Below are positions 17,594 through 41,762 of a DNA stretch of 64,000 nt, one piece after another. The notes under the pieces were generated by a model that saw only the letters and a program-made list of their open reading frames with translations, made no database searches and had not been told where the DNA came from. Made by a program: the position numbers and the translations under genes. Position 1 is the first letter of the stretch; each line of letters starts with the position of its first letter. This stretch comes from Macrostomum lignano (Eukaryota): NCBI GenBank assembly GCA_002269645.1, contig NIVC01000064.1:558001-622000 (forward strand), written 5' to 3'.

Positions 17594-18344
17594 GCTGCTG
17601 CTCATGCTGGTCATTGCTCATGGGTACAGTGCTGAGCTGCTGCTCATGCTGGTCATTGCTCATGGGTAAAGTACTGAGTTGCTGCTCATACTGGTGTTAT
17701 CAGCAGGAGTAATAAACTAAACGCTAGGCAAGCCAAACAGCAAGTACTTTAACCAGTGTGACAGTGGGTCCACATAAGTCGCCAAAAAGAGATCTATCTT
17801 TTTGGATAAATTGGTACCATATTGGAGTTTAAACCTCCACAGCGAAGACCCACAGGGCTGATTTTGACTGCCTAATTGATTAATTTCTGCAATCCCTTGT
17901 GCAAGAACTTTCTATGCAAAATATAGCGCTTGCTTTGAGCATGCTTTGTTGTTTATAGTATATAGCTCGTACTTTTAGTACTTTATATAGTAATTGTCAG
18001 ATACATAATATTGATTAATATTGTTAATGCAAATAGCTGTGCGTATCCCTTTCTAGAAAGTTCAATAAATATCCAATACAGTATCGTACCGATATATCTA
18101 TGGTTGTTAGTTCATATCGCAAATACGCTAATACTTTAAGTGCCCCCCAAACTGCTCAATTTTTCATCTTGTGTATTTTTTTGTTAAAACTGATAAAATA
18201 TACTTAATTATAAGAAGCAAAATTCAACAGGTTATGGGCCCAGCCGAGGCCACTGCGAGTACTTCGATGTACTAGATCATTCTGGTAATCTGGTTCTTCG
18301 TGCCATCTGGAAACTTGATCGCTCGGTCGATCAGTTACGTTGCT

Positions 18345-21300: not shown

Positions 21301-23937
21301 CACCAAATTCAAAATGCAATAAAAAAGCCAGGCAGCCGCAGTGCACAGATAAACCGTGTGAAATCCAAAATCAGCCTACATGTGAGTCCCACACTGTCCT
21401 GGGCAGGCCGAGAGCTGGACAGAATTGAGATGGTCTGCCAGAGCTCGGCTGCACTTTAATAATAAACAACTGATGAAGCCCAAGAGTGCAATTGAGAGGC
21501 TGAGCAGCTGCCTCTTGCGAAAATTTATGCATGTATAGTTGGTTCGATTCCGTGCGATTGGCCTGAGGCCATTCTCAGCCATGAAGGCCAACTTCTGAGG
21601 CTCTGGCAGAATGGATTAGTTTCATTCTACACCGATATCAACTAAAGTCACTGTACTAATTGCATACCTGTACACTGTGCAGACAATGCGATAGGATTTC
21701 TAGGATTGCTTTTTTGAACTTCTGCTGGGTCATAGATTCATGGGAAATCAGTAGTTTTCAGGGCATATTGTATCGACCGAATTCTCTCTTCAGGGGAGGC
21801 GTGGGAGGAGAGTACATGTCGAAGGAATTTTCTGCGTTTTTACTTGCAAAAGGAATTCGACACGAAATTTCGGTTGCCCACACACCAGAACAGGACGGTG
21901 TTGCTGAAAGAATGAACCGTACTCTCATCGAATCTGCTAGAACAATGATAACTCATGCTGGTCTTAGCAAATTGATGTTTATTGGGCAGAAGCCATCAAC
22001 ACAGCCGCGTATATCCGCAACAGAGTCCCGACAAACTCGGTAGCGCCAATGATGACACCCTACGAAAGATGGTGTGGACGAAAGCCAAACATCTCACACC
22101 TTCGAACGTTTGGCTGTGTAGCTTATGCTCACATTCCTACAGTAGAGAGACAAAAACTTGATAAGAAGACTACCAAGCTTAGATTCGTTGGCTACAGTGA
22201 CAATCAAAAGGGCTACAGATTGTTTGACGAAAGAACTAGGAACACAGTTGTTCGTTACGATGTCATCTTCAATGAGGGAGACTTCGGAAAGTTGAATGAT
22301 TTCCAGCCGAACAATGAAAAGATAAATTCACATATGGAAGTGAACCTCGACTAGCACAACAGCCGAACAACTCCGAATGAAGAAATTGAAACTGAAATCC
22401 AACAAATTCTGCCAACGACCACGCGACAAAGGAAAACCCCAGAGCGTTTTCAATACAATGAGAACTTCGAAGTAGCTAGCCTAAGTACAACAGAGCCACA
22501 ACATCGTGCTTTTCGAGCTATGGAGATTTTGGAACCCAGATTGATTGACGAGGCTTGGAGTTGTGACAATGCGAAGGAATGGAAAGAAGTAACAGACTCG
22601 GAATACAACTCTCTGATAGAAAATGATACGTGGGAATTAGTTTCTCTTACAGAAGGACGAAAGACTGTTGGCTGCAAGTGGGTATTCAAAGTGAAGCATG
22701 ACAGCTGCGGAAACATTGAACGATTCAAAGGACGCCTGGTTGCCAAAGGGTATTCTCAACAACCTGGAGTGGATTATGACGAGACGTTTTCTCCTGTGGT
22801 AAGATTCTCATCAGTCTGCAAGCTGAAAAGATCGCTATATGGTCTAAAGCAATCACCCCGGTGTTGGAACAAGGCCCTCTGTGATTACCTAATCTCGATT
22901 GGATTCAAGGAAAGTGGAGCAGACCAATGTGTGTTCACTCGCAAACTTGGAAAAATGTCAATCATTGCGGTTTATGTTGACGACTTGGTGATGGCTACTG
23001 ATACTATGGATGAAATGCAGAGTATCAAGGAGGAATTCACTCGACGATTCAAGATGAAAGATATGGGAGAGCTTCATTACTGTTTAGGAGTGACAATAGT
23101 GATTGACTCAGAGAGACGATTTCTTCAACTTCATCAGAAGCAATACATTATGCAACTACTGAAGAAGTTTAAAATGTTGGAAGCAAACCCAGCCACAACC
23201 CCAATGGATTCAAGCGTCAAGCTCGTTGAAAACGATGGCTACAGCAAATTCGTGGATCCAAAGGCCTATCAATCAATTGTAGGCAGCCTATTGTACGCAG
23301 CGATCGCTACACGGCCAGACATTGCTCAAGCAGTGGGAGCAGTATCGAAATTCAATTCCAAACCAACTGAGGCTCATCTCACCGCTGCCAAGAGAATTCT
23401 TCGATACCTGAAAGGCTCATCGGACGTCGTTCTGAAATATGAGAAGTCTCGAAGTAACGAGATCATTGGCTACTCAGACGCTGATTGGGCGTCGGACTTG
23501 GATAGCAGACGCTCAGTCACTGGAAGTGTCTTCATTATGGCCGGTGGAGCAGTAACATGGTTAAGTCAAAAGCAAACCACGGTGGCGTTGTCAACGACAG
23601 AAGCTGAGTACATGGCCCTTGCGTCTGCGACACAGGAGGCAATATGGCTTCGTCGACTTGTAAGCGATTTGGGTGCCAATGCCACTGGGTCAACTGTAAT
23701 TAAGGAAGACAATCAAGGAGCCATTGCAATGTAAAAAATCCGATTCGACACAAGCGGACAAAGCATATTGACATCCGCTATCATTTTATTCGAGATGCTA
23801 TTCAAGCTGGTACTGTGAAACTGGAATATTGTCCGACAAAGGAAATACTGGCGGACATTCTGACAAAGCCAATTCCCAGGCATCAGTTTGAAAATCTGCG
23901 ATAAATGCTTGGTATTAAGTGTATGGATATGAATTGA
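18345..23937 (+). pseudogene. copia gag-pol: Gag, zinc knuckle, protease, integrase, RT, RNase H (stops, frameshifts, insertion)
   Basis: CYTCGKEGHFSREC; WIIESGAT; LWHQRLGH; VHSDICGP; FIDDFSR; GGEY..PEQDGVAERMNRTL; KGRLVAKGYSQ; LYGLKQ; YVDD; YSDADWA; EAEY; EDNQGA; TKHIDIRYHF; order PR-IN-RT-RH. Confidence 0.92.
20062..21779. mobile_element. Non-autonomous element with 373-bp TIRs nested in the copia integrase
   Basis: 20062-20434 is the reverse complement of 21407-21779 (CGGTCGATAC...; only a GGG/AAA mismatch seen); splits integrase between ..ETEKTI and ..GGEY; no clear TSD. Confidence 0.85.
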
Positions 23938-25896
23938 AGTAACTGGAGTAACTGAAGTAACTAATGTCATTGTCATCCATTTTTAATATCAGAGACTACT
24001 TCGCTCCTTCACCGGATAAAGTACACGATAGAAAAATACTGAAGCTGAGTGGCCAGTGAGCGAACCTGGAGCAAACACTTCACTATTTATCATAGTCAGC
24101 TCTTGTCCCGTTCTGTGACTGTTATTTTCCTCTCTGTTTGTAGTTCAGATGAAGAACGAATCGTAAATTTTTCTCGAGTTTCCGTATACATGTGCTGCAT
24201 GTACAGCTTTCCCATTGTGTATTTTTACGACGGTTACTTTATGTAATAAAACTATTCAACATTTAAGAAAACCGACCCTGCACCCGCCTTCTGATTGCCT
24301 ATCAAAAAGTCAAATATGATACGAGTATACATTGGCAACTGAAAGCATGCGCATACGGATGGGCCATAGAACAATGCTTTTAAACGAGCCTCATACTTTT
24401 TTCGCCATGAATTGGCTCGTTTCCGGTCCTGAGTTATCAAGTTGTCCTTGGTGCCCCCCCAAACTGCTCAATTTTTCATCTTGTGTATTTTTTTGTTAAA
24501 ACTGCTAAAATATACTTAATTATAAGAAGCAAATTTCAACATGCTTGTCATGACATCTGTTTAACTGCCTCGATCACTGAACACGCAATACAAATTTTAA
24601 TTTTCTAGCTTTTTCTGGTCGTTTTTGTTGCTCTTCGTTTTCTTTTGTCTTTGCCTGCACTTTAATTACATAAAATTCAGCGTGACCTAAACTAATAAAC
24701 CTTTTCTAAACAAATCAACAATGTTTATTCAGATGAAAAATCGACATGATTTATATCAAGCACCAGTATTGCGTTTTTTGTCAAAAGTAACAGTGATATA
24801 TTATCTTAGAAATTTGCTTTGTACATATTATTCACGAATATATGTATTATTTATTTTATCTTCTTGTGTAGCCTTGAAGGTATGAATAAAGCTTTTTAAA
24901 TTTTATGCTTTGTCTGCCGAACTATGAATCTTTTTAATATTTCATTATTAAATATATCACTCAGCAAGTGCTGTACATCTTGTGAGTTGATGGATAGATT
25001 AGTTGTGAGAGTGAAGAAGTCATGAGCTGTGTCAAGCCATTTTAAAAATTATGCCTGAAAACACTAAATAAAGAACAAGATTGAAAATCCTGAGTTTATC
25101 AAAATTCTACTCTGCTACCTTACTTCAGGAAGATACGAACCTCTTGACTTAGCTGCAGGGTCATCGACCCGCGTTTTGCAACGAGGATGCGGAGGAGACC
25201 GCCCACTCCGCTGGCACCTGGTGACCAAAAACTTCTATGGAAGTGATGTCGCTCAGGGGGAACCAACCCGTCGGTGTCGTCTGCAGCGACGTCCTTCTCA
25301 GCAATAAGAGCCTCAGTTGCAATCTTTCGGCGGCGGTCCGACTAAAGTGCATCTGCCCGTAGTTCACCAAACGGCAGTGCCCGTCGAATGTTGCGTACTT
25401 GGCTGGTGCAAGAGTCCTACTTTCTTACGACGTACATGTATCTATCAGTTTCATTCCATACCTGGCGACAAACCAAGCTCAGAACAGGTGTGTGTTGGGG
25501 AATCGTTAAGTTTATGCTCCAAAAGCTGAGGGCTTACTATTGCATTGTAGATACTCGAGATCCTATAGCTAGATAAAAATACGAATTTTCTATCTTGATG
25601 TACTGCGATGTTCCTAGAGGAATCGCTAAAGCAAGCAAGCGAGACAAGGCAGCGGAAAAACACGTTAGTTATGAATAGCACTTATGCACTTCCAAAATAC
25701 TAACTGGCACACAATATTCAGCAAAAAACTATTGCCGATGCTACTATAAGCACATGTAAAAACAACAATTAGATGCTTATGCTAAAAAACAGTCAATTAC
25801 AATTACCAGTCAGTCAATGCAGCAGCCATTAATTCACCCGGAAAAGATTGGAGGCAGCTGTCTTGCAATTATCTGCATAAGAGGCGTTATCACCGT

Positions 25897-25929
25897 TTGT
25901 TTTTGTTGTTTTTGTTGTTGTTGTTGTTG
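25897..25929. repeat. (TTG)n microsatellite
   Basis: Direct inspection. Confidence 0.9.
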
Positions 25930-27395
25930 TGAACGTCTTCTGTAAATGTCCATACGGCAACGAAAAGGGCTTTAGACTCTGCTGATCATACATCGACACG
26001 CCGGAGGGACGCAGGAATGAATTGCGCGACTTCTTCGCCAGCAACGTAAACGCGCCCTCGCCGCCGCTGCCCACCAACTTTTCGCTCCCGCCGCTACCAG
26101 CTGAGGTGACTTCTGCACCAAGTCAGTCACCACAGAGATCGGAAAACACCAGGCTGCAAGGCGTTAGGACCGGACGAATCCCGGTCGAAGCTCTGCGGCT
26201 CTGCTGTGTGGCTTCCCAATTCGCTAGCGTGATTAACCGTGCGCTTACTGGCGCCTCTGCACCCACCGAGTGGAACAAAACGGCACATTGTGGCCAACCA
26301 GAAGAAGGCAGGGGTAACGCGGAAAGAAGAATACCCCGGGATCTCGTTGATGCCCTGCACGGGCGAAGCTTTTCAACCGCGGCTGCTGCTTGACCGTCTG
26401 CAGCCGGTGCTGGACCCGTAACTCTGTTGCAAGTAAAATGGGTTCCGGCCGCAACGCGGTACAGTAACCCAGATCATCGAGAAAACGCGCATCCGCCACT
26501 CCATGCTAATCATTGTCTTTAGTCACTTCCGAAAAGCGCTCGATTCTGTCTGGCCTATCAGATTCCACGGCATCTGATCGACGCCATCCCGACACGGGAG
26601 TTGCTGTTGTGACCTGTTCGACAAAATCGTCAGGTGTGCTGAGCGACAAGCTGGCGTGGCTACGCCGACGAACTGTTAAAGGCGTCCAGCGCCAGATCGA
26701 TGGTCTGGTCGAAGTGCTTAAGACAGAGGTGCTGGCTGACATCGCAGTGAACCAGACATGCCGCGACGAAAAACGGGCAAAAGACCACGCTTGCACGCAT
26801 CTGACGGTCGCATGCCACCAACGGTTCACCTACTTCGGTGGTCTAATGCCCCACTTAAAGGAAGACATCTGGCGGCGCAGAGGACTTGCCTGAGTGGCCT
26901 ACAGATCCGTCTGGGCCGTCCTTTCGTCCGAAGAGCTGCCCGACCGTACATGCATCATGTATTTAGAGAGCTCGGCTGTGGACGAGACCGTCTTGTTGTA
27001 TAATGCCGAGCCGTGGACGCTGACGGTCACGCTGGAGCGGCAGCTGGACTCGGCGCACTCTAGACTGCTCCCTGCGGCCTTTCGAGCTGACAAAGAGCTT
27101 CGGGACCGAGGCCCTGTACGAGAGGGCCCAGTTGCAACATCCGTTCACCTCTAGTGGCTCTGGTAGACTTCACTTGGCGATCCACGTGATCAGGGCTAAC
27201 AGGTACTGCCCCCAGCCTCTAAAAAGACGTCCTGCTGCTCACCTTCCAGGGCCAATTTAGGCGGGGCCAGGAAAAAGTGGAGATACTTGGACGCCGGGAT
27301 GCCCGACTTCACTGGAAGGGTGGACTTCGTCCGTTAACTCGCGCTGCGGAGCGCCATCTAAAGCACCCTGACCGCTTGACCTTGCTGAGTTCCAT
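25930..27395 (+). mobile_element. Decayed, 5'-truncated RTE-like non-LTR retrotransposon
   Basis: Frameshifted RT motifs KALGPD..EAL, YPGISL..RLLLDRL..GFRP, VFSHFRKALDSV, KTEVL, FTYFGG, and C-terminal LLYNAEPWTLT..LDSAHSRLL, HVIRA..YCP. Confidence 0.75.
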
Positions 27396-27397
27396 CT

Positions 27398-28601
27398 TTT
27401 GTTGTTGTTGTTGTTGTTGTTGCTTGCGGAAGGTGGTCTAGGGCTGCCTATGCAGGCAGTCCAAGAACCTAGCCACCAGATCGCCATCGGCCAAGTCCTC
27501 CAGTTGGTGTAGGTCCGTCGCGTGCCGAGCTCCGGCCAGGGCCGGACATTCGAGGAAGTGGTCCTTGTCTTCTAAGAGGTCGCACCGGAGGCATCTGCTA
27601 TCCTCCCTAGTGCCTATTCGGTGCTGATAGTACGCTGTAGAAGGATCGTGACCGGCACGCATTTGAGCTATGGAAACCTGCAGCGCGCGAGGTCGAGCAG
27701 GCATCGAGGGGGTCTTGCTGTAGACCCTCCTCAGCCGGTCATTCAGGAGAGGCTTATAGTTGATGAAACGGCGTATACGGCTTCGGGCTGCCTCGATGTC
27801 GATCCCTAGAAGATCCTGGGGGAGCAGACAGGCGTTCTTTGCCTCGGTGTCGGCTCTCTCGTTACCAGGAGTCCCAGAATGACCTGGGATCCACTGCAGG
27901 ACCACGTCGGCGTGGCTCTCCACCTGCGTCAGCTTGCGCTTGAGCGACTCGAGCAGAGGGTTCAGGGAGTGCTGCCGACCTTTGAGCGCCGCGATGGCCG
28001 ATTGGCTGTCGGTGAGGATCAGGGCCGAGTCCTGCTTAGTCTCAAGGATGTGGTCCAGGGCGAGGTGCAGAGCTGAGAGTTCAGCTTGGAACGAGCTACA
28101 CCAGCGCCCGGTAGCAGCTCCCTCAATCCAAACCACCTGGCCCGTAGTAGGGGCGACTGCCACACAGGCTGCCCCTCCATTCTCCGTTCCTTCGGAAGCA
28201 GATCCGTCAGTGAAATAGTGGATCTTGCGGTCGCCCCATGATTTAATGGTGTCTTCCGTCGCTGACCGCCTGGTCTCTGGCGGATCGCTCCTGGAGATTG
28301 GCTGAGTCAGGTGTTCGCAAAGGGTGACCCGATCCTCGATTCTCGGAAGCCAGGGCTTGTTTCTGATCCAGTTTGATTCCCGGCGTGGGCAATTCAGAAT
28401 CTGCTCGGATTCCAGCTTGGCTGCGCCAAGGGTCGTGGGCTGGCCGCCGGAGGGCCTTCTCGACAGCCAGTAGGGCTCTTCTGTGTCCTTCAACGGAAAT
28501 GGGAACGGTTCCGAGTTCGAGGTAGACGGCCTCCTCCGGAGCGGATTTAGGGAGGCCGGCCACGATTCTGAGCGCTGTCCTTTGAGCTAGATCGCCACCT
28601 G
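27398..28601 (-). mobile_element. 5'-truncated RNase H-containing LINE (I/Ingi-like) with (CAA)n tail
   Basis: ORF 28493-27438: YFTDGS..AELSAL..LTDSQSA..LQWIPGH..GNERAD (non-LTR RNase H), then QMRAGH..C..C..HFLECP (C-terminal CCHC); upstream frameshifted RIVAGLPKSAPEEAV; (CAA)n after the stop. Confidence 0.85.
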
Positions 28602-28692
28602 TTGTTGTTGTTGTTGTTGTTGTTGCTGCTTTTTTCGTTGTTGTTATTGTTGTTGTTTTTGCTGCTGTTTTCGTTGTTGTTGTTGTTGTTTA
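28602..28692. repeat. Degenerate (TTG)n microsatellite
   Basis: Direct inspection. Confidence 0.9.
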
Positions 28693-29439
28693 GGATTCAT
28701 TTTAATTTCTTCGTCAAATTAAACTTAGCGCTCCGAAATTCTCAGACGTTTGGTTCTAACCAATGCGGAGCCTGATAGGAGCTTCCTACCATGTCTGGTT
28801 TCTACTCGTAGCATCAGCAACTGCGGATCCGCTTGCTTTCCGTCGTCTTCAGGTCTGCGTCGTGCCATCACTGTTTTACTCCTGTCTGTGCTTTTGCATT
28901 GTTCACTTACTAGAGATTAGTCTGTGCTCACCTTTTTATTTGTTTACTCAATAGTTGACCTAAAAACCGCAGGGCTTACTAATATTATTAAGATTTTTAC
29001 TGCCTGAATCATTGAATCGATTATTTCTTCCAATTTCGTCATTTCAGTTCTAATGGCTTGAAAAGCCACTTCCTTGGGCGGTAAAGCACGGGGAAGGTGT
29101 GGAAGGCTGTAGGCGCCTTGCAGCGCTGTGACTTCAAGCGTGAGTAACAGAGATCTGTTAGAATTGGCCGAAACCCCGGATTTAGTACCTTCTCGCACTG
29201 AGCATCTGTAAACCGTTGTTGAGTTGCATAGTACTCTTTGTAGTCTTATTTTCATCAGTCACAGCCAAAAAGATCCCCAGCTGATCCGTCCTCTGGTTGG
29301 TGTAGCAGACTCCCAATTTTTCGATCTAGCTCAAACATTCCGATCATCAGGACGGGGCCCTCCCTGGTTTGTTAGAATATGATGCTGCTTGCGTCAAGCC
29401 TCAAGGTAGACAAAGTGACAGCGAGTGGCAAAGTAAGCT

Positions 29440-29525
29440 TGTGCAAACGACAGCTCAATCGCAGCTATTGCGCGGCCCATCTGAAGGCTGTGTACGGCTG
29501 CTCAGTCCAAGGACTGGGGGGTCGG
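29440..29525 (-). mobile_element. 3' fragment of the SINE at 30.4 kb
   Basis: Reverse complement matches 30590-30670 (CAGTCCTTGGACTGA..GCAATAGCTGCG). Confidence 0.75.
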
Positions 29526-29778
29526 CACACAATGATAGATGATTGTCTCATGAATGTATTTTTAGAAGCCTTAAATAATGATTCCTAAGCGTTGAATAAT
29601 GAGCGTACAGCATGACACAATGCATGGGCATATTGCCACTGGGACTGAGTGCATCTAAGCGAAATTCCTTTATTTCATTAGCAAATGCCCATTTAGAGTA
29701 AGTCTTAACTGTGCATTTTTCTATTTTTGGCGACTAGTCGAAAGATAGAAAGAGAACAGAAAGACTATTAGAGTTATA

Positions 29779-29960
29779 CTAGCAATCTACGCCCCCCGTT
29801 GGGGAGCCAAAGAAATGCAATACACGTTTTTTTAATAAGCTACATGTATCCTTGAAATCTTAAAAAATCTCCTGTCAAAACTTGTCAGCCTTGAAATGTC
29901 AGTAATTCCCCCCCCACAAGCTTTAACATATCAACTTCCCCCCTTGACATCTCATTAGAG
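29779..29960 (-). mobile_element. Helitron-like remnant (same family as 36227)
   Basis: A|CTAGCAAT..GCCCCCCGTTGGGGAGC terminus plus degenerate CCTTGA(C/A)ATCT units. Confidence 0.5.
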
Positions 29961-30405
29961 TTATATTTTCATTTTTAGTATATAGGACTTAGACATTGAG
30001 TACAGGTGGATAGGTGGATGTTCGGTGTAATGCTATGTGCATTGTAGCTCGTACTGATGAAATAAAAGATATACTGATGGCTTTTGATGAGGTACTAAGT
30101 AAAAAAATTAAATAAGACGCTGCAGATTAGAGTTTCTAATCTTGATACTTTTTCTTAAAAGCTTTTTTCCGCATTTGGTAAGCAAATTTAAGACACTGCC
30201 TTTAGATAGATAGTTATTACGAGCTAATATCAGTGAGAAAGTATAAAAATTTGTCCAACAAAATTTCTTGTATTGTTGCTTCTTTAACCTCTAAAATCCA
30301 TTTTTTCATCCGTTTCAAATGAAAATCAGTGCAAATGAAAGTTGAGGATTTCTCCAACATTTTCTATCTCAAAATTTCTCACTATCTCACAATCTCTCTA
30401 GGCTA

Positions 30406-30700
30406 GGGGTTGAAGCCTAGTGGTGAAGATCGACTTGAAGGTCGGGGGTTCGATTCCTGTTCCTAAAACAATTTGTGTCCTTGAGCAAGACACTTAACTC
30501 TGCATTGTTTCAGTTCACCCAATTGTAAAATGGGTGCCAGCATTAGCTGGGGTAATTGAGGCTGTGTGTGGCGACCCCCCCCCCCCCCCCCAGTCCTTGG
30601 ACTGAACAGCCGTACGCAGCCTTCAGATGCCCCGCGCAATAGCTGCGGCTGAGCTGTCGGTTGCACATCTGGCCCTTACGACAGGTGCAATAAATTTTTA
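30406..30700 (+). mobile_element. tRNA-derived CORE-type SINE
   Basis: A-box-like AGCCTAGTGGT, B box GGTTCGATTCC (30447-30457), CORE-like GTGTCCTTGAGCAAGACACTTAAC...GTAAAATGGG, AATAAA at the end; two further partial copies in the window. Confidence 0.8.
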
Positions 30701-31909
30701 TTATTATCTATATCACCAATTTCTTAAATTCTGGATAGGCTAAAAAAATTCTACTCGAATGCCTTAGTTTTCCATTACTAACTTACTTAGCGTTACTGAA
30801 TGTTTAGAGCGCCACTTAATCTTGACTTGGGACAATTAAAACGAATTTATTTCGACGGAGACTGAAACAAGGGATCAACAACAATAGAGGGAGTAGCGAA
30901 GTATTGTAAATTATGAGTTTGCGAATAAGAAAGAAACCACAGAAAATAAAAAACACAGGCTCTGCAAATAAACAAGGTGAGCCAACACAACGCGCGAGAA
31001 GGGCTTAAAACCAGATCGGAGGGGGGAGGTGGGTGCGCGCGGGGCAGAGAGACGGAGAGGGAGGGGCGCGACGGAGGAAGAGAAAGTGTACACATGGCGC
31101 ACAAGTGGACAGAGCAGGGGAGAGATCGAAAAGGGGGTGGTGTCCGACCGCTCATTAACCACCGTAAACGCCACCCCGAAAGGGCACACGCTTACGGGTA
31201 ATAAAAGATGTCCTTTGTGTTGCAGAATTAAAGCAACCCGAAGGAGTTCTGGGATTTGCATCTGGAGTGAAAATGATTTTTTACTTCAACGTACCTAGTG
31301 AGGTCACGCACAGAATGAGGCCGCTCAAAAAATTGTCAAATCAACAGAAGTTGTTGATTTTTCATTCAACAAATCAAAATTACCGTTGTCAATTTCACTA
31401 AAAGAAAAATGCGAAGACTTGAGCAAGCTGAGGGCTGCAATGGCGTGACATGTATGGCGACAGGCGATTGACACACGGCTTCCTAAGTCACGTGTCATTC
31501 TGGCCCTTTTATTTTTCGCATTTAATATCCTATCTCAATTTGGGATATGTGACAGCAAACTACCTAGCTCGTATTAGTAAGAAAACAAAGTATTGAATGC
31601 AGGGAGAGTGTTAAAAATATGTTTTTAAGTGTGTACAAGCAAGTCGCTGCAAACAGTTTCGTACGGAGACCACTGAATTTTGAAGCGATGAACTCCCTAA
31701 CCTAGAACTATAGGTGTCTTAGACCACACTGGATACTCTTTAACAATGCAGTGTAAGCAACCCATATTTTTCTAGATTCCTAAAACTGTGGCATTCTTTA
31801 AACTATAATGCTTGAAAAAAAACACACCATGTCATTCAAACATGCAGTTTTTACTGCTCACAGAGTCCACTAGCCAAGCACGATGGATTGCTAAAACATC
31901 CGCCTCGCA

Positions 31910-34298
31910 ATGGCCTGGAGCTGGCTGCTTCTCACAGCTACAGCGTTTGTCAGCCTCCTCGTCATCAATTGCGAGGCAGCCCACCACTACTGCATCCAGG
32001 ACAGCATCAAAGCATTCTCAATGAACGCTGACTCAGACCAGCCTGAGACTCTGCTCACCAACCACAGGGAGGTGAACGGACTCGCCTCATCGCAGCGATG
32101 TAGCTGGGAGGTGAGGCTGGGCCGCATGACTCAGCCGCTGCAGCTCGTGCTGTCGCTTCGTCTCGGTCACCGCCGACCGGGTGCTGCTGCCAGCGGACCC
32201 GGATGTCCGTCTGAGCTGACCGCGGCGCTGCAGGGTGAGTTTTCGGGGGCCTGCAGCGCTGACGAACCACGGAGAATTTACGGGGAGAGGTTGCGGTGAA
32301 GTTCGAGTAGCCCTTATCATTTTTCCCATCTACCCTAAAAACTTTTTAAGGGATCAGATATTAATGCTATAAATTTATAAAAATCCAATTTTGGATAAAA
32401 ATCCTAGGGTAAAACTCTGGCGCTCCCCAAGTGAAGAACTGTCTACCCCAGACTCTCTAGGACGAATAATGAAAAAATCAGAAAAAATGAAGGAGAAAGC
32501 GTTAGCCAAAATTTAGAAAAAGACCACAAAAACTTGCAATTTTACTTTTATGGACAACACATACACGTACAATGTGTACCTACAAGCACAGTTCTAATAG
32601 TTGGCTAGGCTTTGAGGTCGGACACAGATGTTAGGTAGGAACTTCGGTGAGAGTTAGTTGCTTTAGTGAAACGCCTAAAATGCTCGTAGCTTCAGAAATA
32701 TAATTAAGGCGCCACTTTTCGGAGCACAATGTATTTTGTTAAATTTATTTAATTTTATTCTCTACAACTTAGACTCAGGGTTCCGCAAGACCTGGAAGAA
32801 TGGAACGAATCTGCCAAAAACTCCATTGGTCGTTTCAGTGATGAACCAGTGAGTTCCGTAGCATCGTACATGCAGTTTAAACACCTGGGCTTAGCAACTG
32901 TGGGATAGCTGAGCGATGTAATCATTGCCTTTAATATTTAATAGCTCGCAGCTGCTGACGGTCCGGTTCTCGACGGGCGACTCCGAGCCGAGCGCGAGCT
33001 GCGGTCGCATCGAGCTGACCATCGCGGTGGCCAAGAAGGGCTTCTGCGGCAGGCACATGCTGCTGCATCGGGGCCGCTGCCTCTTCATCTCCGACTCGGA
33101 GCTGCGGCTGTCGGATCTGAGCGGGACTGGAGTTGAGCTGGCTGCGATCTCCGGGAAGGAGCAGCTGGATAAGCTTTTGAGGGACAGTGAGTGCTGAGCT
33201 GCTGCTCATGCTGGTCATTGCTCATGGGTACAGTGCTGAGCTGAGCTGCTCATACTGGTCATTGCTCATGGGTACAGTGCTGAGCTGAGCTGCTCATACT
33301 GGTCATTGCTCATGGGTACAGTGCTGAGCTGAGCTGCTCATACTGGTCATTGCTCATGGGTACAGTGCTGAGCTGCTGCTATTCTCAATTTCAGACGAAC
33401 GCAGGGCCAAACAATACCCATTTCTCAAGCCGCTGAACTTGAGCAAACAAGCAAGAGTGGGAGTTGTTCGCTGTTCCGCCTCAAAGACTTTTTCTGTCCA
33501 TTTCAACTCCACCAGCGGCGTGTGCTCACGGGAACGTTTCAACTCAACTGCCGTTTCAGATCTGGCAGTTAAAGGGTGAGCAGTTTTTTTATCTATTTAT
33601 TGATATAACAGTAAATAATTAACCTAGTCATAGGTTGAACACTCGCTCACTGACTAGAAAAGATCAAGCAGAATGATAAATGATTACATGTACATCCCTG
33701 CTTTTCACTGCCTGTAGAAATCTCACTGCCGACACTCAGTGCACAGCCTTGCAAGCTGATCCTGAAGGCAGAGCCGGGCTGCACAGCTGCTCATGCAGAG
33801 TGAAGATGCTTTCACTGCTCAGCTTCAGCGAGACTCCATCATTCGGCTCAGAGTCGGGCAAAGTGAGAACAGGAAACTGTTGGCTACATCACTTATGTGG
33901 GAAAAACTCAAGCCACAGAACTCCAGCGAATTCTAGGACAACTGGAAAATTTGGAGATAATTTTGTCGCTTTCTTCATTGCGCTGTACATAATTTCTGCC
34001 ATCACTTTGGCATTCATGTGCCACTACTCAAGATTTCTCAAGGTTGGTTGACAGTAGTTGTGTTATGTCCATAACTATGTGTTTATTTATATTCTTCGAA
34101 CTCAGCTTGCTATGACATATATTGACAAGGTTTTATATGAATGTTCCGTTTCAGATGTTCCGGTCTGGACCGATAATGGTGCAGAGAGCGGGTCAAGACT
34201 CTGACTTCGCTGCTGCTGCTGCTGCTAAAAGAAAGCATGTGTTGCATATTTTTATAGAACGGCAGTTCACTCCGTACAGCCCTCTTTCTGAGGTGTAA
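31910..34298 (+). CDS. Receptor copy 4, apparently intact: SP + CUB-like + CTLD-like + TM + tail ending YSPLSEV*
   Basis: Exons 31910-32234, 32773-32848, 32945-33186, 33395-33575, 33718-34042, 34155-34298, all phase-compatible; TM FVAFFIALYIISAITLAFM; last exon runs into unit 1 of the 77-bp array. Confidence 0.75.
33192..33375 (+). repeat. Exon-B VNTR (copy 4; 42/44-bp variant, ~4 units)
   Basis: GCTGAGCTGAGCTGCTCATACTGGTCATTGCTCATGGGTACAGT. Confidence 0.9.
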
Positions 34299-35722
34299 CT
34301 TTTGTACGCTTTGTATCTTTTCATATTTTTATAGAAAGGCTGTTTACTCCGCACAGCCCTCCTTCTGAGGTGTAACTTGAGTACGCTTCGTATCTTTTCA
34401 TATTTTTATAGAAAGGCTGTTTACTCCGTACAGCCCTCTTTCTGAGGTGTAACTTGAGTACGCTTCGTATCTTTTCATATTTTTATAGAAAGGCTGTTTA
34501 CTCCGTACAGCCCTCTTTCTGAGGTGTAACTTGAGTACGCTTCGTATCTTTTCATATTTTTATAGAAAGGCTGTTTACTCCGCACAGCCCTCTTTCTGAG
34601 GTGTAACTTGAGTACGCTTCGTATCTTTTCATATTTTTATAGAAAGGCTGTTTACTCCGTACAGCCCTCTTTCTGAGGTGTAACTTGAGTACGCTTCGTA
34701 TCTTTTCATATTTTTATAGAAAGGCTGTTTACTCCGTACAGCCCTCTTTCTGAGGTGTAACTTGAGTACGCTTCGTATCTTTTCATATTTTTATAGAAAG
34801 GCTGTTTACTCCGTACAGCCCTCTTTCTGAGGTGTAACTTTTGTACGCTTCGTATCTTTTCATATTTTTATAGAAAGGCTGTTTACTCCGTACAGCCCTC
34901 TTTCTGAGGTGTAACTTGTGTACGCTTCGTATCTTTTCATATTTTTATAGAAAGGCTGTTTGCACTGCACAGCCCTCTTTCTGAGGTGTAACTTGAGTAC
35001 GCTTCGTATCTTTTCATATTTTTATAGAAAGGCTGTTTGCACTGCACAGCCCTCTTTCTGAGGTGTAACTTTTGTACCCCTTGTATTTTTGCCTATGTTT
35101 TACAGAACGCTGTTTACTCCGTACAGCCCTCTTTCTGAGGTGTAACTTTTGTACCCCTTGTATTTTTGCCTATGTTTTACAGAACGCTGTTTACTCCGTA
35201 CAGCCCTCTTTCTGAGGTGTAACTTTTGTACCCCTTGTATTTTTGCCTATGTTTTACAGAACGCTGTTTACTCCGTACAGCCCTCTTTCTGAGGTGTAAC
35301 TTTTGTACCCCTTGTATTTTTGCCTATGTTTTACAGAACGCTGTTTACTCCGTACAGCCCTCTTTCTGAGGTGTAACTTTTGTACCCCTTGTATTTTTGC
35401 CTATGTTTTACAGAACGCTGTTTACTCCGTACAGCCCTCTTTCTGAGGTGTAACTTTTGTACCCCTTGTATTTTTGCCTATGTTTTACAGAACGCTGTTT
35501 ACTCCGTACAGCCCTCTTTCTGAGGTGTAACTTTTGTACCCCTTGTATTTTTGCCTATGTTTTACAGAACGCTGTTTACTCCGTACAGCCCTCTTTCTGA
35601 GGTGTAACTTTTGTACCCCTTGTATTTTTGCCTATGTTTTACAGAACGCTGTTTACTCCTTACAGCCCTCTTTCTGAGGTGTAACTTGTGTACGCTTTGT
35701 ATGTTTTGCGTATTTTTTACAG
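34243..35722 (+). repeat. 77-bp tandem array, 19 units, each containing a splice acceptor + mini terminal exon
   Basis: Period 77 bp; two sub-blocks (~10 + ~9 units); each unit has a pyrimidine tract + AG, then ..TTTACTCCGTACAGCCCTCTTTCTGAGGTGTAA. Confidence 0.95.
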
Positions 35723-36226: not shown

Positions 36227-36790
36227 CTAGCAATTCGCCCTCCCGTTGGGGGCCAACAAAAAGAAGAATAAATATTTTTGAATAAAATGCATGTCGCTTC
36301 TGAACTGTCAGTCTTAACATCTCAGCAATTCCACTGTAAGTCTTGACATCGCAGTGATTCCCCCCTAAGCCTTGACATCTCATCAATTCCCCCCTAAGCC
36401 TTGACATCTCAGCAATTCCCCCCTAAGCCTTGACATCTCAGCAATTCCCCCTAAGCCTTGACATCGCATCAATTCCCCCTAAGCCTTGACATCTCATCAA
36501 TTCCCCCCTAAGCCTTGACATCGCATCAATTCCCCCCTAAGCCTTGACATCTTATCAATTCCCCCTAAGCCTTGACATCTCATCAATTCCCCCTAAGCCT
36601 TGACATCGCATCAATTCCCCCCCCTAAGCCTTGACATCTCATCAATTCCCCATAAGCCTTGACATCTCATCAATTCCCCATAAGCCTTGACATCGCAGCA
36701 ATTCCCCCTAAGCCTTGACATCTCAGCAATTCCCCCTAAGCTCTGACATCGCAGCAATTCCCAAATTAATCGTTTATGTTCGACATAATG
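36227..36790 (-). mobile_element. Helitron-like element carrying ~15 x 29-bp minisatellite
   Basis: A|CTAG at 36226-36230 followed by GC hairpin GCCCTCCCGTTGGGGGC; units CCCCCTAAGCCTTGACATCTCA(T/G)CAATT (36340-36760), related to the 2.1-kb repeat in reverse. Confidence 0.6.
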
Positions 36791-38486
36791 TTTCTTTTAT
36801 TTTTGAAATTATGCTTCTTTCATGTTGTCATCTTTTGATAATTGTACCGCTAAATTAAACTGCACTTATGGATGAATTTCATGTAAATATTTTATAGTAC
36901 AGTGAGAGTCATCTGCTACGAAAAGTTGTGCCACATTTTTTTCACGTTTCACGCTGTGTAAGTCAGTGATTCAACCCAGCATCAGTAGCTGATTGAAAGC
37001 GGAAGTGCACCATAGAGGGCTGCGCTAATGACTCACTTGTACTCACATGGAATAGTGACTCCAAATACGTAGAACAGGGAGCTGGTCTGTGCAATCAGCG
37101 CGATGTTGATTTTTACCTGTCTTAAGGCCGTCCCCTGTCCCCCTCTCCTTAGGCTCAACCGAAGGTATCTTTTCTCACCACTTTTATCGCTCAGGCAGTG
37201 AAAACGCTGAGCACTTTGTCTGCCACTACCGGGTGGTCTTCACCAGGCCAGACTCACTCAAGTCTGGCCAAACCCGGTTCTCTCCGATGTTCGCAGGCCC
37301 AAGAAAATACCGCTGCTCACCCGGTACCTCTAGGATGCAATGACCCCCCCCCTGAGCGACATCACTTCGATGGTAGCTATCTGTCGTCAGGGGCTCGCGA
37401 AACGGGTGTTCTAGATTATTCTGCAGCTGGTGCCCCCTACAGCTAAGACAAGCCAAGCCAAGTCCACCTGTCTACAAATCCCCACACATGACCAACTCTG
37501 TGCAGTGCATGCAGTGTACGACATAGCCTACGACACTGTCAAGTGCATTCGTTTGTTTGTAGAAAGACGGTTTTTGGTACTGTCATAGGCTACACTCTCC
37601 TGAAAGCACTACTCAGAAAATTTACACTGTACACTGTAGCTAGCAATGGACTGACTAAAGATGGAAACAATAACGTGCTCTGCTAGCAGGCATTACAGCG
37701 CCCGCGCAAAACAGTTGATTGTCTCTCTGCCAGACACCTCCGACAGAAGACGGAAAGGCAGCGCAGTGGGCATTATCTGAAAAGTGCGCGCATCAGGTAG
37801 GGATTCAGAGCTGTATGTATCGCATTTCTTGGAATATTTCAGCCGACATCAGATTGGTGTTTGAATTCTGAGGGTGTAATTTTCTATCGGCACTGGCCAA
37901 AACCCTGCGGAATTCAAATTAGCACAAGTCTTTAGAGTCTCAGATTTTGTTGTTATAATACACATTTGATTGCTTTTTAACTTTTAAAAATAGCTTTATA
38001 GTTGTCAACTGTCATTTTAATTAGTCTGCAAATATACGAGCTATAGCATTAGCTGATTAGTTGATTAGGTAATTAGTTAATTAGTTTTGCAATTTTTCAG
38101 TCGCATTTTATTAAAATCTGCTTCAGATGTGCAGCAAACAGCTGCTTGCATTTCTCCTGCTCATCGCGGTATCTCAGACTCCAATTCGAGGGTAAGTAAG
38201 CTAAGCACTTGGCTCTCAATGTAATGTGAGCAATACGACCAGTGAGGATTGCATTATTATGGTGTGGGATTGGCAAAAATTGCTTTGGAAATGGGGAGGC
38301 ACTTGTATCGAACTGCTAGCGTTATTTTTCTAATGTATAAAGTATGATGTAAAAAAAATAAAAGAAAAGAAGGCCTTCATAGCTAATGGAATTTGAAGTT
38401 TGTTCTTTTTTAATTATTAACACTGGCTTCCTTGACAGCCAACCAGATTTGCTGCTTAGATCTGATCCATAAAGAACGTGCCATAC

Positions 38487-40399
38487 ATGTTATCCGCCTT
38501 CATGCTTGCGCACCAACTGTTCCCCATGCAGGACACTCGCTGAGCGGCACCAGTGCCACAGCTCAGGACACCTGCTGCAACTGAGGGACGGTGAGACGGA
38601 AACCCTGGACACACGCAACAGGGACCAGAGCGAGCTGACTGCATCGCAGACCTGCCTATGGGAAGTGAAACCGCCGGCCAACCTGATCGAGCCGGGCAAT
38701 TTCATCTTGAAAATCGCTCGGAAAAGAGGCGGGTCTGAGGCGGCGATGCCCGATGGCAATCCACCGAGCTGCGATTGGAGCCTCACGGTGGAACTGACAG
38801 GCAAGTTAGATTCAAGATCATGGCGGAGGTCAAAAGTGAGTATTATGAGTAATTAACAGCTCAGTTATGGATTGCACTTTGCAGGATCCAGCTTCAGCAA
38901 GGCGTGGCACAACCGGGACCTGCCGCCGAAGGCACCCCTGGTAGTCCCTGTGACCAACAGGTATGATTCTGATTTTGCATTTAAAAGCAGCTGGTGGCTT
39001 TTTGACTAGTTTATGCAACATTGCGCTGACAGTGTTGGTCCGATGTGTTTCTGTCCTGCAGCTCGCAGCTGCTGACGGTCCGGTTCTCGACGGGCGACTT
39101 CGAGCTGAGCGCGAGCTGCGGTCGCATCGAGCTGACCATCGCGGTGGCCAAGAAGGGCTTCTGCGGCAGGCACATGCTGCTGCATCGGGGCCGCTGCCTC
39201 TTCATCTCCGACTTGGAGCTGCGGCTGTCGGATCTGAGCGGAACTGGAGTTGAGCTGGCTGCGATCTCCGGGACGGAGCAGCTGCATGAGCTGATGAGGG
39301 ACAGTGAGTGCTGAGCTGCTGCTCATGCTGGTCATTGCTCATGGGTACAGTGCTGAGCTGCTGCTTATGCTGGTATTGCTCAAGTGTACAGTTTATAACC
39401 GCCGTTATTTCAGATGATGACAGAACAAACGCGCACCCATTCATCAGACCCTTAAACCTGACCAGACCTGTGAGAGTGGCGGTGTTTCGTTGCAACAAAA
39501 TCATTCAATGGACGCAGGTTGCACAGACAGTGAGCTCCAGTTTGTGCGTGATCAGGAATTTCAGCACGACTGGGGCTGCTCAGGAGTCCTTTACTCAACG
39601 GTTCGTTGCTTTTCGTTCCATAGACGTACAGGGCTATGATTTTAAGTTCACGCTAAAGACTGTATCTTGAGTCCTTGGCTACCTGAGCAATTCCCATTGA
39701 GTCCTTGATTACCTGAGCGATTCCCATTGAGTCCTTGGCTACCTGAGCGATTCCCATTGAGTCCTTGGCTACCTGAGCGATTCCCATTGAGTCCTTGGCT
39801 ACCTGAGCGATTCCCATTGAGTCCTTGGCTACCTGAGCGATTCCCATTGAGTCCTTGGCTACCTGAGCGATTCCCATTGAGTCCTTGGCTACCTGAGTGA
39901 TTCCTTGGCTGTTCTTGGCAGTCCTTGGCTGTTTAAGAAAATGTAAACACCATATTACCTAATTAATCATTCCAGGAACCAGTCCATCTCATCACAGGTA
40001 GACTGCGCATCAATCAGTGCTGAACCTGACGATTCGGAGAAACTAAAATTGTCATTCATTGACTGCGACCAGCCGCAGCATCTGTTGCTGAGCTTCCTAA
40101 TTGAGCCAATTAATCAAGATTTGCAACACAACTCCAACTGCTTGGAATCCACAATAACCAGCTGTAAAGATTTGAGCATGCATGTGATTTTTAAAGAATC
40201 AACTGATAAAGAAACGGACAGTTCAGATAAAACTGATCTGATAGCTTTATTTGTGTCTGTGACAGTCTCATTGCTAGTGTCGGCCGTGATTCTGGTAGTT
40301 GCTGTTAAATTTTTTATTTTAAAGCGACAAGGACGTCGTCGCAGATCTAGAAGGTCCAAACCCTTTGATTCATTGTCTGGAATCCCTTTAAGATCTTAG
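38487..40399 (+). CDS. Receptor copy 5, divergent; 1-nt frameshift near the start; GC-AG first intron
   Basis: Exon A ~38487-38800 (ETLDTRN..CLWEV..CDWSLTVELTG) with donor AG|GCAAGT; exons 38885-38960, 39062-39303, 39414-39600, 39976-40399; TM LIALFVSVTVSLLVSAVILVVAVKFFIL; possible extra tail exons to 40622. Confidence 0.65.
39665..39930. repeat. 30-bp minisatellite (~8 units) in intron of copy 5
   Basis: GAGTCCTTGGCTACCTGAGCGATTCCCATT; resembles the Helitron-borne 29-bp unit. Confidence 0.9.
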
Positions 40400-41391
40400 T
40401 TGTTGATTTTAAATCACACTATGTTTGTTCTGGAAAGAGACGATCGGTGCCATATGAAAAAGTATGGTGAGTACCTGACTTACCTGAGTTACCTGACTGC
40501 TAAAACTGACGTCATCACAATTTATTTGTGATGACGTCAGTTGTGATGACGTCATACAATTTTGTTTTGCGTATTTTTTTAGAACGGCTGTTCACTCCGT
40601 CAGCCCTTTGTCTGAAGTGTAACTTTTGTACGCTTTGTGTTTTTTGCGTGCTAACAAGTCATTGCTACAAGCATTATTAATGAACGCTACCCGCCAGATC
40701 TAGAACTGCGCCCAACCTAAGTACCGTGTTTTCCCACAAGATCATAACCTCCGAAACCACCCCAACCTGATTCGATTGTTTGTCTGCTATCAGTTTTATG
40801 TGATTATTATACTACTAACATCCATGTTTGAGAGAAAATACAAATAATTGAATAATCGGCCAGTTCGTCATCGATCACAATCAAGCTTCTACGGGTTCGT
40901 CACTAATTTGCGTACATGTAGCAGCCCGTTAGCACGCGAACTCAATTACGTCAGATCAAATATTCGTCACAAAGTGGAATGTGTGTTACAGCAGAAGACG
41001 CTACGGAGGTGCACCCTTGGTAGTCCCTGTGACCAACAGGTATTATTCTGATTTTGCATTTAAAAGCAGCTGGTGGCCTCTTGACTAGTTTATGTAACAT
41101 TGCCTGACTGACTGTGTTGGTCCGATGTGTTTCTGTCCTGCAGCTCGCAGCTGCTGACGGTCCGGTTCTCGACGGGCGACTTCGAGCCGAGCGCGAGCTG
41201 CGGTCGCATCGAGCTGACCATCGCGGTGGCCAAGAAGGGCTTCTGCGGCAGATACATGCTGCTGCATCGGGGCCGCTGCCTCTTCATCTCCGACTCGGAG
41301 CTGCGGCTGTCGGATCTGAGCGGGACTGGAGTTGAGCTGGCTGCGATCTCCGGGACGGAGCAGCTGGATGAGCTGATGAGGGACAGTGAGT

Positions 41392-41685
41392 GCTGAGCTG
41401 CTGTTCATGCTGGTCATTGCTCATGGGTACAGTGCTGAGCTGCTGATCATGCTGGTCATTGCTCATGGGTACAGTGCTGAGCTGCTGCTCATGCTGGTCA
41501 TTGCTCATGGGTACAGTGCTGAGCTGCTGCTCATGCTGGTCATTGCTCATGAGTACAGTGCTGAGCTGTTGCTCATGCTGGTCATTGCTCATGGGTACAG
41601 TGCTGAGCTGCTGTTCAAGCTGGTCATTGCTCATGGGTACAGTGCTGAGCTGCTGCTCATGCTGGTCATTGCTCATGGGTACAGT
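41392..41685 (+). repeat. Exon-B VNTR (copy 6), 7 x 42 bp
   Basis: Direct count. Confidence 0.95.
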
Positions 41686-41762
41686 GCTGAAAAAATATGT
41701 AACAGAGAGAGTGAGTAAAAACACAAATCGCAAAGCACACGGTAACCCAAAAGTTCTCATGC

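Follow-up and report, generated by a model that had tools for sequence, protein, structure and literature searches.

A 77-bp tandem repeat cut across the stop codon of a Macrostomum lignano membrane-protein gene is probably a minisatellite with a translated first unit

The stretch of DNA analysed here (the window) is 64 kb of Macrostomum lignano, positions 558001 to 622000 of scaffold NIVC01000064.1 in assembly Mlig_3_7, which we take to have been built from long reads. The window holds 37 tandem arrays, amounting to 15.7% of its length. Genome-wide, simple and tandem repeats make up 15% of M. lignano (PMC5730564). One of the 37 lies directly behind a gene that is the fourth of six tandem copies. 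This copy-4 gene has six exons, which join into an uninterrupted open reading frame of 430 codons ending ..HIFIERQFTPYSPLSEV and a stop:

31910-32234, + strand: exon 1, encoding the signal peptide and the first part of the ectodomain, with a phase 1 donor; placed from the reading frame and splice sites
32773-32848, + strand: exon 2 (DSGFRKTWKNGTNLPKTPLVVSVMN.), placed by comparison with protein P0001; flanked by AG and GT, and the frame closes with it
32945-33186, + strand: exon 3, the most conserved exon of the ectodomain, common to all six tandem copies (family D12)
33395-33575, + strand: exon 4
33718-34042, + strand: exon 5, with the transmembrane helix FVAFFIALYIISAITLAFMCHY; donor AAG/GTTGGT, phase 0
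34155-34298, + strand: last exon, MFRSGPIMVQRAGQDSDFAAAAAAKRKHVLHIFIERQFTPYSPLSEV and stop; unit 1 of the array takes up its final ~56 nt
36267-36286, + strand: two AATAAA hexamers, the first canonical poly(A) signals past the stop

Exon 1 has 91% amino-acid identity to the homologous exon at the related loci L001 and L003. Exon 2 is required to keep the frame. An earlier note on this DNA had taken unit 1 to be the in-frame end of copy 4, and the six-exon, 430-codon frame bears this out. The same read-through of the last exon into unit 1 is found in three paralogous genes: at L001a, within an intact frame of 433 codons (pN/pS of 0.51 against copy 4); at L003, likewise in frame; and in ‘copy 5a’ of L001, by way of a 64-nt GT..AG intron.

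In unit 1 the pyrimidine tract and AG are coding (H-I-F-I-E). They are codons rather than an acceptor, because the nearest upstream GT (34239) leaves an intron of just 19 nt. Since the read-through is in frame in all four genes, an intron in unit 1 is also needless. An intron of 18-19 nt within unit 1 (CAT/GTGTTGCATATTTTTATAG/) was considered and rejected as too short. The description of every unit as a tract, an AG, a tail and a stop thus stands for the repeated units, but not for the AG of unit 1.

Where does the gene end? Neither AATAAA nor ATTAAA occurs between 34298 and 36266, and the first AATAAA lies 570 nt beyond the array. The pair of hexamers, ~580 nt past the array, is kept at all three of the array loci scanned (the window, L001a and L001b). 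Judged from these signals, the pair at 36267/36281 is likely to mark the 3' end of the copy-4 gene, and all of the array would then fall within the 3'UTR.

The array consists of 19 head-to-tail units of exactly 77 bp each (34222-35684), and a partial unit carries it on to 35722. TRF reports 34245-35717, with a period of 77, 19.1 copies, 96% matches, 0% indels and a score of 2123. The string GAGGTGTAA occurs 19 times between 34290 and 35676 at a spacing of exactly 77 nt, and the 26-nt core, likewise present 19 times, is expected 0 times from shuffles. By all three measures the repeat is as the earlier note described it. Two types of unit form separate blocks:

34243-35068, + strand: A-type block, units 1-11; first stop at 34296-34298, the others following at 77-nt intervals; His replaces Tyr in units 2 and 5, and units 10-11 read ALHSPL
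35069-35684, + strand: B-type block formed by units 12-19, seven of them identical and unit 19 with a single synonymous change; the AG lies one phase away from that of the A units
35685-35722, + strand: terminal partial unit (CTTGTGTACGCTTTGTATGTTTTGCGTATTTTTTACAGAA), followed by unique flank conserved at all array-bearing loci
40563-40649, + strand: lone homologue of the unit, not amplified, which lies behind copy 5 and has lost 1 nt of its Tyr codon

Every unit ends ..SPLSEV-TAA, the stop being TAA in 19/19. The tail peptide is TPYSPLSEV-stop in 15 units, TPHSPPSEV-stop in unit 2, TPHSPLSEV-stop in unit 5 and ALHSPLSEV-stop in units 10 and 11; read unit by unit, these are the four variants reported before, all ending in SEV. 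A units have the form ..CATATTTTTATAG/AAAGGCTG and B units ..GCCTATGTTTTACAG/AACGCTG. The two differ at 12 positions, all in the first 40 nt. Relative to the stop, the AG of an A unit needs 1 nt of upstream exon and that of a B unit 2, in agreement with the 1-nt shift of acceptor phase that had been seen in the second sub-block. The copied 77-bp piece takes in ~18 codons from the end of the gene, their TAA stop and a further 23 nt of 3' flank; the claim that the satellite amplifies part of a terminal coding exon is supported. In the downstream units the open frames that end in SEV run to merely 23-27 codons, and because 77 = 3 × 25 + 2 no frame is open across the whole array. A long open reading frame through it is ruled out on either strand, 77 being no multiple of 3 and stops lying in all frames.

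What kind of array is this? We think it probable that it is an ordinary unstable minisatellite of the VNTR type, of which the first unit alone is translated, rather than a series of exons used in alternation. A 77-bp segment across the gene end would have been duplicated in tandem, and the array would then have grown by replication slippage or unequal exchange. Translation would end at the first TAA (34296-34298), so that units 2-19 would be left untranslated, most likely within a 3'UTR of ~2 kb that ends at the AATAAA pair. The copied segment contained the tract, the AG and the SEV-stop, and this alone is why each is found 19 times; the 19 sets of acceptor, reading frame and stop are copies of one event and do not count as independent signals. 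The unit falls within 10-100 bp and is repeated head to tail, its copy number varies between loci, and its variants lie in blocks, as in other minisatellites. The array behind the translated tail is probably neutral.

How does the copy number vary? The related loci of this one assembly, on three scaffolds, carry 1, 2, 9, 19 (the window) and 20 (L003) units, a variation between paralogous or homeologous loci and not between individuals. The maps of variant repeats are abbcbbbdefgggggggh for the window and ibcbbbcbbjkefgggggg for L003. They have in common an A block, an ‘ef’ pair and a B block, the block lengths differing; the flanks of the two loci are 97.6% identical. The 2-unit array (L001) consists of one A and one B unit, which argues for an old A + B duplication followed by expansion block by block. 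The identity or near-identity of units within a block argues that the expansion was recent. The B unit matches the second unit of that 2-unit array at 77/77 positions, the flanks of those loci being ~94% identical. A clean and datable birth of a minisatellite could be followed from a single unit (copy 5) through an A + B pair (one homeologue) to arrays of 9, 19 and 20 units.

The genome of M. lignano is highly repetitive and its assembly redundant (PMC5730564), and the array or its length might on that account be an artefact of assembling repeat-rich, partly duplicated DNA. However, the array recurs with consistent flanks on three separately assembled scaffolds, its variant orders different yet clearly related, and the published description presents Mlig_3_7 as improved, with an N50 of about 0.2 Mb (PMC5730564). 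We give an artefact hardly any credence.

Could the units instead be alternative last exons, as had been suggested, the choice of acceptor giving a tail with tyrosine (TPYSPL) or without it (TPHSPL, ALHSPL) and always ending in SEV? Every unit in the window combines a tract rich in pyrimidines with an AG, a short open frame and a stop, the B-type tract TTTTTGCCTATGTTTTACAG resembles a good acceptor, and the conserved part of the unit is its coding 3' part. Tandem, mutually exclusive terminal exons are known, moreover, in Drosophila pip and PGRP-LC (PMC9013439). On the other hand, the donors at 34043 (after the transmembrane exon) and 34239 are phase 0, whereas the acceptors need phase 1 (A) or 2 (B) if the SEV frame is to be read, and the sole phase-1 GT past the transmembrane helix is a weak CGG/GTCAAG. 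An AATAAA or ATTAAA of its own is present in 0 units, a weak test, as other genes here are also without canonical hexamers nearby. In the 9-unit array of L001b the AG is lost from 5/9 units, precisely those that amplified. The B units, with the better acceptor, encode the same TPYSPL as unit 1 and would therefore toggle nothing. P0002, the only published model with a donor here (34239, in a fused model), skips all 19 units, and the copy number is unstable between near-identical loci. NCBI's transcript-based gene lists for L001 and L003 include no gene with the SEV tail, and the protein database searched held no transcript-derived protein with this tail. Given the phase mismatch, the lack of poly(A) signals, the losses of AG and the pattern of copy number, a set of last exons that toggles the tyrosine is not upheld, and we regard it as very unlikely.

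The homologue behind copy 5 bears on the same question. It is single, as the earlier note had it, and its SPLSEV codons show synonymous changes only (CTT to TTG, GAG to GAA); the 1-nt gap then remarked upon proves to be the deletion in the Tyr codon. Read as a mini-exon, with a donor at 40353/40354 and an acceptor at 40582/40583, it continues in frame to ..RRRRSRRTAVHSVSPLSEV and a stop, the donor lying just past the transmembrane helix and its RRRR stop-transfer sequence; this is a further point for the units as exons. It may be a relic, or else a terminal mini-exon that is joined by splicing. Because this homologue would splice in frame, with only synonymous changes, the AG of the units may descend from a real acceptor.

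If the array is a minisatellite, is all of it free to vary? Over the final 24 nt of the unit (..SPLSEV-TAA), 2 variant alleles occur among the 50 units of four arrays, against ~10.6 expected if variants were spread evenly, alleles being counted although they are not independent events. This near-invariance, the confinement of A/B differences to the first 40 nt and the identity of B units across loci go beyond a purely neutral model and point to some constraint or biased homogenisation. The invariant core of ~24-26 nt, ACAGCCCTCTTTCTGAGGTGTAACTT, can form a small CCUC/GAGG hairpin. It might be a selected element of the 3'UTR, bound by an RNA-binding protein or small RNA, whose copies tune the stability, localisation or translation of the mRNA. 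With this would agree the near-invariance of the core in all 50 units while the remainder varies, independent expansion in at least two gene lineages, the probable position of the array upstream of a conserved AATAAA pair, and a unit folding energy modestly below that of shuffles (z = -2.0 and -2.4 for two unit types, a weak effect). But in unit 1 this core doubles as the coding end, and selection on unit 1 together with concerted evolution gives the same pattern. The 2 copies against 19-20 in close homologues argue against any need for dosage. The Rfam scan of the whole 64-kb window found no family, and the weak z-scores and non-independent allele counts likewise tell against such an element, which we consider quite unlikely.

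Might the array serve at the level of DNA, as a reservoir from which unequal crossing-over or gene conversion swaps a downstream variant into the translated unit 1? A contraction with its breakpoint upstream of the Tyr codon puts the tail of a downstream unit on the gene, exchanges of this sort are frequent by the variant maps, and the His and Ala-Leu-His variants are common downstream. However, the first units at the four loci keep Tyr in 4/4, the changes from Y to H, L to P and TP to AL being confined to downstream units; swapped alleles are either unobserved or removed. Swapping is, besides, a by-product of any such array and no evidence of function. We think a reservoir quite unlikely. It is quite improbable, taken more broadly, that the gene end is not inert, its units being spliced or recombination exchanging a tail with Tyr for one without, and the 24-nt core being kept through use. 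An array spliced or recombined for use would be an unusual route to diversify a signalling tail. We conclude that a minisatellite, translated in its first unit alone, is the probable account, and that a minisatellite cut across a stop codon can, in a genome with 15% tandem repeats, pass for a purpose-built series of exons bearing signalling motifs.

What, then, of the tail that is translated? A class I PDZ ligand has the form X-S/T-X-hydrophobic-COOH; YxxPhi is a sorting signal, an ITIM is S/I/V/LxYxxI/V/L and an ITSM TxYxxV/I. The translated tail, ..HIFIERxFTPYSPLSEV-COOH, places S-E-V at the C-terminus after a transmembrane helix and a basic stop-transfer stretch. As a pattern, on inspection, it is the S-x-V-COOH class I end that had been proposed, and YxxL fits likewise. 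T-P-Y-S-P-L agrees with an ITSM at -2 and with an ITIM at +3, is a strict consensus for neither, and also fits the generic YxxPhi. Four paralogues that otherwise diverge fast have retained the tail as their translated end, and it is probably functional, as a PDZ ligand, a YxxL sorting or signalling motif, or both. We regard ..HIFIERLFTPYSPLSEV as a conserved C-terminal peptide, common to a small family of membrane proteins specific to M. lignano, and as a candidate for PDZ binding.

The copy-4 gene is lineage-specific and encodes a single-pass type I membrane protein of Macrostomum lignano, its topology judged by eye from the signal peptide and transmembrane helix. A protein database search found no homologues outside this species. 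The UniProt name ‘CUB domain-containing’ comes solely from automatic annotation; with Pfam, neither the copy-4 protein nor P0001-P0004 matched CUB or any other domain (E ≤ 1 to 10). A sequence search of the PDB with P0001 gave no match, and the AlphaFold2 model from a 4-sequence alignment had a pLDDT of 37 and was unusable. The auxiliary subunits of the Neto/SOL-1/LEV-10 type are CUB-domain, single-pass membrane proteins with PDZ-ligand tails, and we offer them as a lead only. Like them, the present protein has a signal peptide, a Cys-containing, beta-rich ectodomain, one transmembrane helix and a short PDZ-type tail; unlike them, no member of the family is matched by Pfam CUB, and homologues were found in M. 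lignano alone.

With known PDZ and YxxL tails this one shares the end S-E-V-COOH and a T-P-Y-S-P-L within a cytoplasmic tail of ~50 residues behind a transmembrane helix, but it is limited to a few M. lignano paralogues and is known here as a pattern match. The terminal exons of pip and PGRP-LC resemble the units: in both cases homologous coding segments are repeated at the 3' end, with an AG and a stop apiece. Those, however, are full exons separated by introns, with their own 3' ends and a shared in-phase donor, whereas the units here are 77 bp long, abut one another, have no poly(A) signals, do not match the phase of the available donors and in some cases have lost the AG. A search of the literature on Macrostomum minisatellites returned nothing specific. 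A further comparison is with the VNTRs at 3' gene ends, such as the 40-bp VNTR in the 3'UTR of human SLC6A3. These too consist of head-to-tail units of tens of bases behind a stop codon, vary in copy number from one related locus to another and contain internal blocks of variant repeats made by unequal exchange. The present array differs in that its unit is cut across the stop itself, and its copies carry 18 codons, the TAA and an acceptor-like tract.

The 77-bp feature is a minisatellite that originated across a stop codon, and the array that it forms lies most probably within a 3'UTR. TRF returns a single tandem array at 34245-35717 (77-nt period, 19.1 copies, 96% matches, 0 indels, score 2123). 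The string GAGGTGTAA occurs 19 times between 34290 and 35676 at a constant spacing of 77 nt. The 26-nt core ACAGCCCTCTTTCTGAGGTGTAACTT likewise has 19 occurrences, where shuffles expect 0. All units, when translated, read LF-x-x-x-SP-x-SEV-stop.

Unit types and unit peptides of the 77-bp array
Units 1-11: A type
Units 12-19: B type
15 units: TPYSPL
Unit 2: TPHSPP
Unit 5: TPHSPL
Units 10 and 11: ALHSPL

The two types differ at 12 positions, all within the first 40 nt, among them two compensating 1-nt indels that shift the AG one phase relative to the stop; their last 37 nt are the same. An earlier note, made from the sequence alone, had described the array, its spacing, variant peptides, sub-blocks and displaced AG, and TRF and exact string counts bear out that description. 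Tandem arrays of this kind are commonplace in M. lignano: the window holds 37 of them (15.7% of its length), and simple and tandem repeats make up 15% of the genome (PMC5730564), a background that fits the minisatellite reading.

To what does the first unit belong? A small gene family is present in the window as six tandem copies. With the M. lignano protein P0001 as guide we built a model of copy 4, the gene preceding the array, from six exons.

Exons of copy 4
31910-32234: exon 1
32773-32848: exon 2
32945-33186: exon 3
33395-33575: exon 4
33718-34042: exon 5
34155-34298: exon 6 (last)

The model has AG/GT at every splice site and an uninterrupted ORF of 430 codons. Its product comprises a signal peptide, an ectodomain rich in Cys and carrying N-glycosylation sites, a single TM helix and a cytoplasmic tail of ~52 residues that ends in KRKHVLHIFIERQFTPYSPLSEV. 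The last exon continues directly and in frame into unit 1, whose 'pyrimidine tract + AG' is coding (H-I-F-I-E), confirming the exonic origin that the earlier note had proposed. Protein homologues of the family are four Macrostomum lignano proteins only, which UniProt names 'CUB domain-containing'; a Pfam search of the family gave no match to CUB or any other domain, a PDB sequence search was empty, and the AlphaFold model of a family protein has a pLDDT of 37.

The window, which locus L002 matches exactly, is 558,001-622,000 of scaffold NIVC01000064.1 in assembly Mlig_3_7. Versions of the locus recur on two further scaffolds of the same assembly: L001 (NIVC01000065.1), which shares ~94% identity with the window, and L003 (NIVC01000648.1), for which the figure downstream of the array is 97.6%. 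The copy-4-type gene of L001 has the same six exons, an intact 433-codon ORF and a pN/pS of 0.51 versus copy 4, and ends in just two units, one of each type. In a different paralogue there, copy 5a, the TM exon is followed by a 64-nt GT..AG intron and an ORF reading into unit 1 of a nine-unit array, ending in HEHEHELHIFIERLFTFYSPLSEV. L001 also has the single unit behind copy 5. L003 has 20 units; its variant map (ibcbbbcbbjkefgggggg) and that of the window (abbcbbbdefgggggggh) have in common an A block, the ALHSPL 'ef' pair and a B block, the block lengths being unlike. The unit series 1, 2, 9, 19 and 20, together with this block-wise identity, is the expected product of unequal exchange in a minisatellite.

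Several features of the gene copies may be recorded here. Copy 4 exons 33718-34042 and 34155-34240 are 86% and 81.5% identical in nucleotides to their L001 homeologue, the neighbouring introns 93% and 89%; every indel in the TM and cytoplasmic exons is a multiple of three, so the sequences suggest fast protein evolution rather than decay. The same intron of all six copies contains 2 to 7 repeats of a 42/44-bp minisatellite, AGTGCTGAGCTGCTGCTCATGCTGGTCATTGCTCATGGGTAC.

Positions of the 42/44-bp minisatellite
612-857
10699-10795
17586-17695
33190-33375
39307-39392
41389-41690

It apparently marks points at which gene copies have recombined. Copy 3 in the window (15980-17587) has three front exons only and stands ~14 kb (17700-31900) from copy 4, with a retrotransposon ORF of RNase H/RT-like sequence (27438-28493, minus strand) between them; L001 and L003 lack the ~14-kb insertion and have one complete gene there, its copy-3 front exons meeting the back exons of copy-4 type at the 42/44-bp minisatellite. 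A 28/29-bp minisatellite, GAGATGTCAAGACTCACGGGGGAATTGCT, lies downstream of two gene copies, at 2086-2678 (plus strand) and, in opposite orientation, at 36313-36762, right behind an AATAAA pair at 36267/36281. Inverted arrays of 14-15-bp units (CGACAATATGACTGC / GGCAGTCAAATTGT) at 6489-6784 and 8057-8301 flank a purine-rich low-complexity stretch (7140-7671) and may represent the termini of a mobile element. In copy 5, exon 1 (38119-38192, signal peptide) begins right after ctgcttcag/ATG, to which the fused UniProt model A0A1I8GUX1 (P0002) joins 34239; this may be an SL trans-splice acceptor, with the tandem genes co-transcribed. Trans-splicing affects 38.8% of M. lignano genes (PMC5730564).

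Is the tail peptide functional? Judged from sequence it is probably a real functional motif, because four genes retain it as their translated end, with TM and cytoplasmic exons that are otherwise only 65-86% identical or unalignable, and because the unit behind copy 5 is joinable in frame and differs within SPLSEV by nothing but synonymous substitutions, which the earlier note had correctly observed of this single homologue with a 1-nt gap. Its 1-nt deletion notwithstanding, a donor (AGAAG/GTCCAA) right after the TM helix and RRRRSRR stop-transfer, a 229-nt intron and an acceptor (TTTTTTTAG/) would give the alternative end RRRRSRRTAVHSVSPLSEV. As a sequence pattern, the tail matches S-x-V-COOH and YxxL.

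Around this unit (40354-40622) the sister-locus annotation ends copy 5 at GIPLRS by read-through (P0003, P0005). Within what would be copy 5's last intron, a perfect inverted repeat, CTGACGTCATCACAA..TTGTGATGACGTCAG (40510-40556), encloses three TGACGTCA (CRE-like) palindromes; they are missing from copy-4-type genes, so the block may be a small insertion. A minus-strand gene ~10 kb downstream (44973-46354), called as a 191-residue gene in L003, has weak, sub-threshold Pfam PDZ matches (E 0.01-0.03); that it adjoins genes with PDZ-ligand-like tails is no more than a curiosity.

Less expected of a minisatellite are the constancy of its last 24 nt (2 variant alleles in 50 units, ~10.6 being expected with even variation), the 3' part shared by both types, and the identity of the B unit (77/77) between loci with ~94% identical flanks. 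On the simplest account, selection on the translated first unit would have spread across the array through concerted evolution, and a pre-existing imperfect repeat, TTGCRTATTTTTTAYAGAA, flanking the original unit would be the source of the B unit's 5' part. It is conceivable that the array has a binding-site role in the 3'UTR.

Might the units serve as alternative last exons? The earlier note had suggested that such a cassette might toggle the signalling tyrosine; the observations lend this no support and partly contradict it. The A-type AGs would require a phase-1 donor to enter the SEV frame and the B-type AGs a phase-2 donor, but the donor after the TM exon (34043, AAG/GTTGGT) and the one used by P0002 (34239, CAT/GTGTTG) are both phase 0, and the sole phase-1 GT after the TM helix, CGG/GTCAAG, is weak. 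Nor do the units have poly(A) signals: neither AATAAA nor ATTAAA occurs from the stop to 36266, and in a scan of three array loci, one in the window and two in L001, each preserves the AATAAA pair ~580 nt past the array. Of the units in the nine-unit array, five have ACATAA in place of ATAGAA and hence no AG, and exactly those were amplified. B units offer the better acceptor, and the peptide that they encode is no different from that of unit 1. Every replacement change (Y to H, L to P, TP to AL) lies in a downstream unit, Tyr being kept in all four first units; this placement fits translation of unit 1 alone, though four loci are too few for significance. The sole model with a donor here skips all 19 units to the cag/ATG acceptor of copy 5 (38127/38128), and neither L001 nor L003 has an SEV-tail gene in its NCBI listing of transcript-based genes. 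Tandem mutually exclusive terminal exons are known in Drosophila pip and PGRP-LC (PMC9013439); from these the 77-bp array differs in being without two of their defining features.
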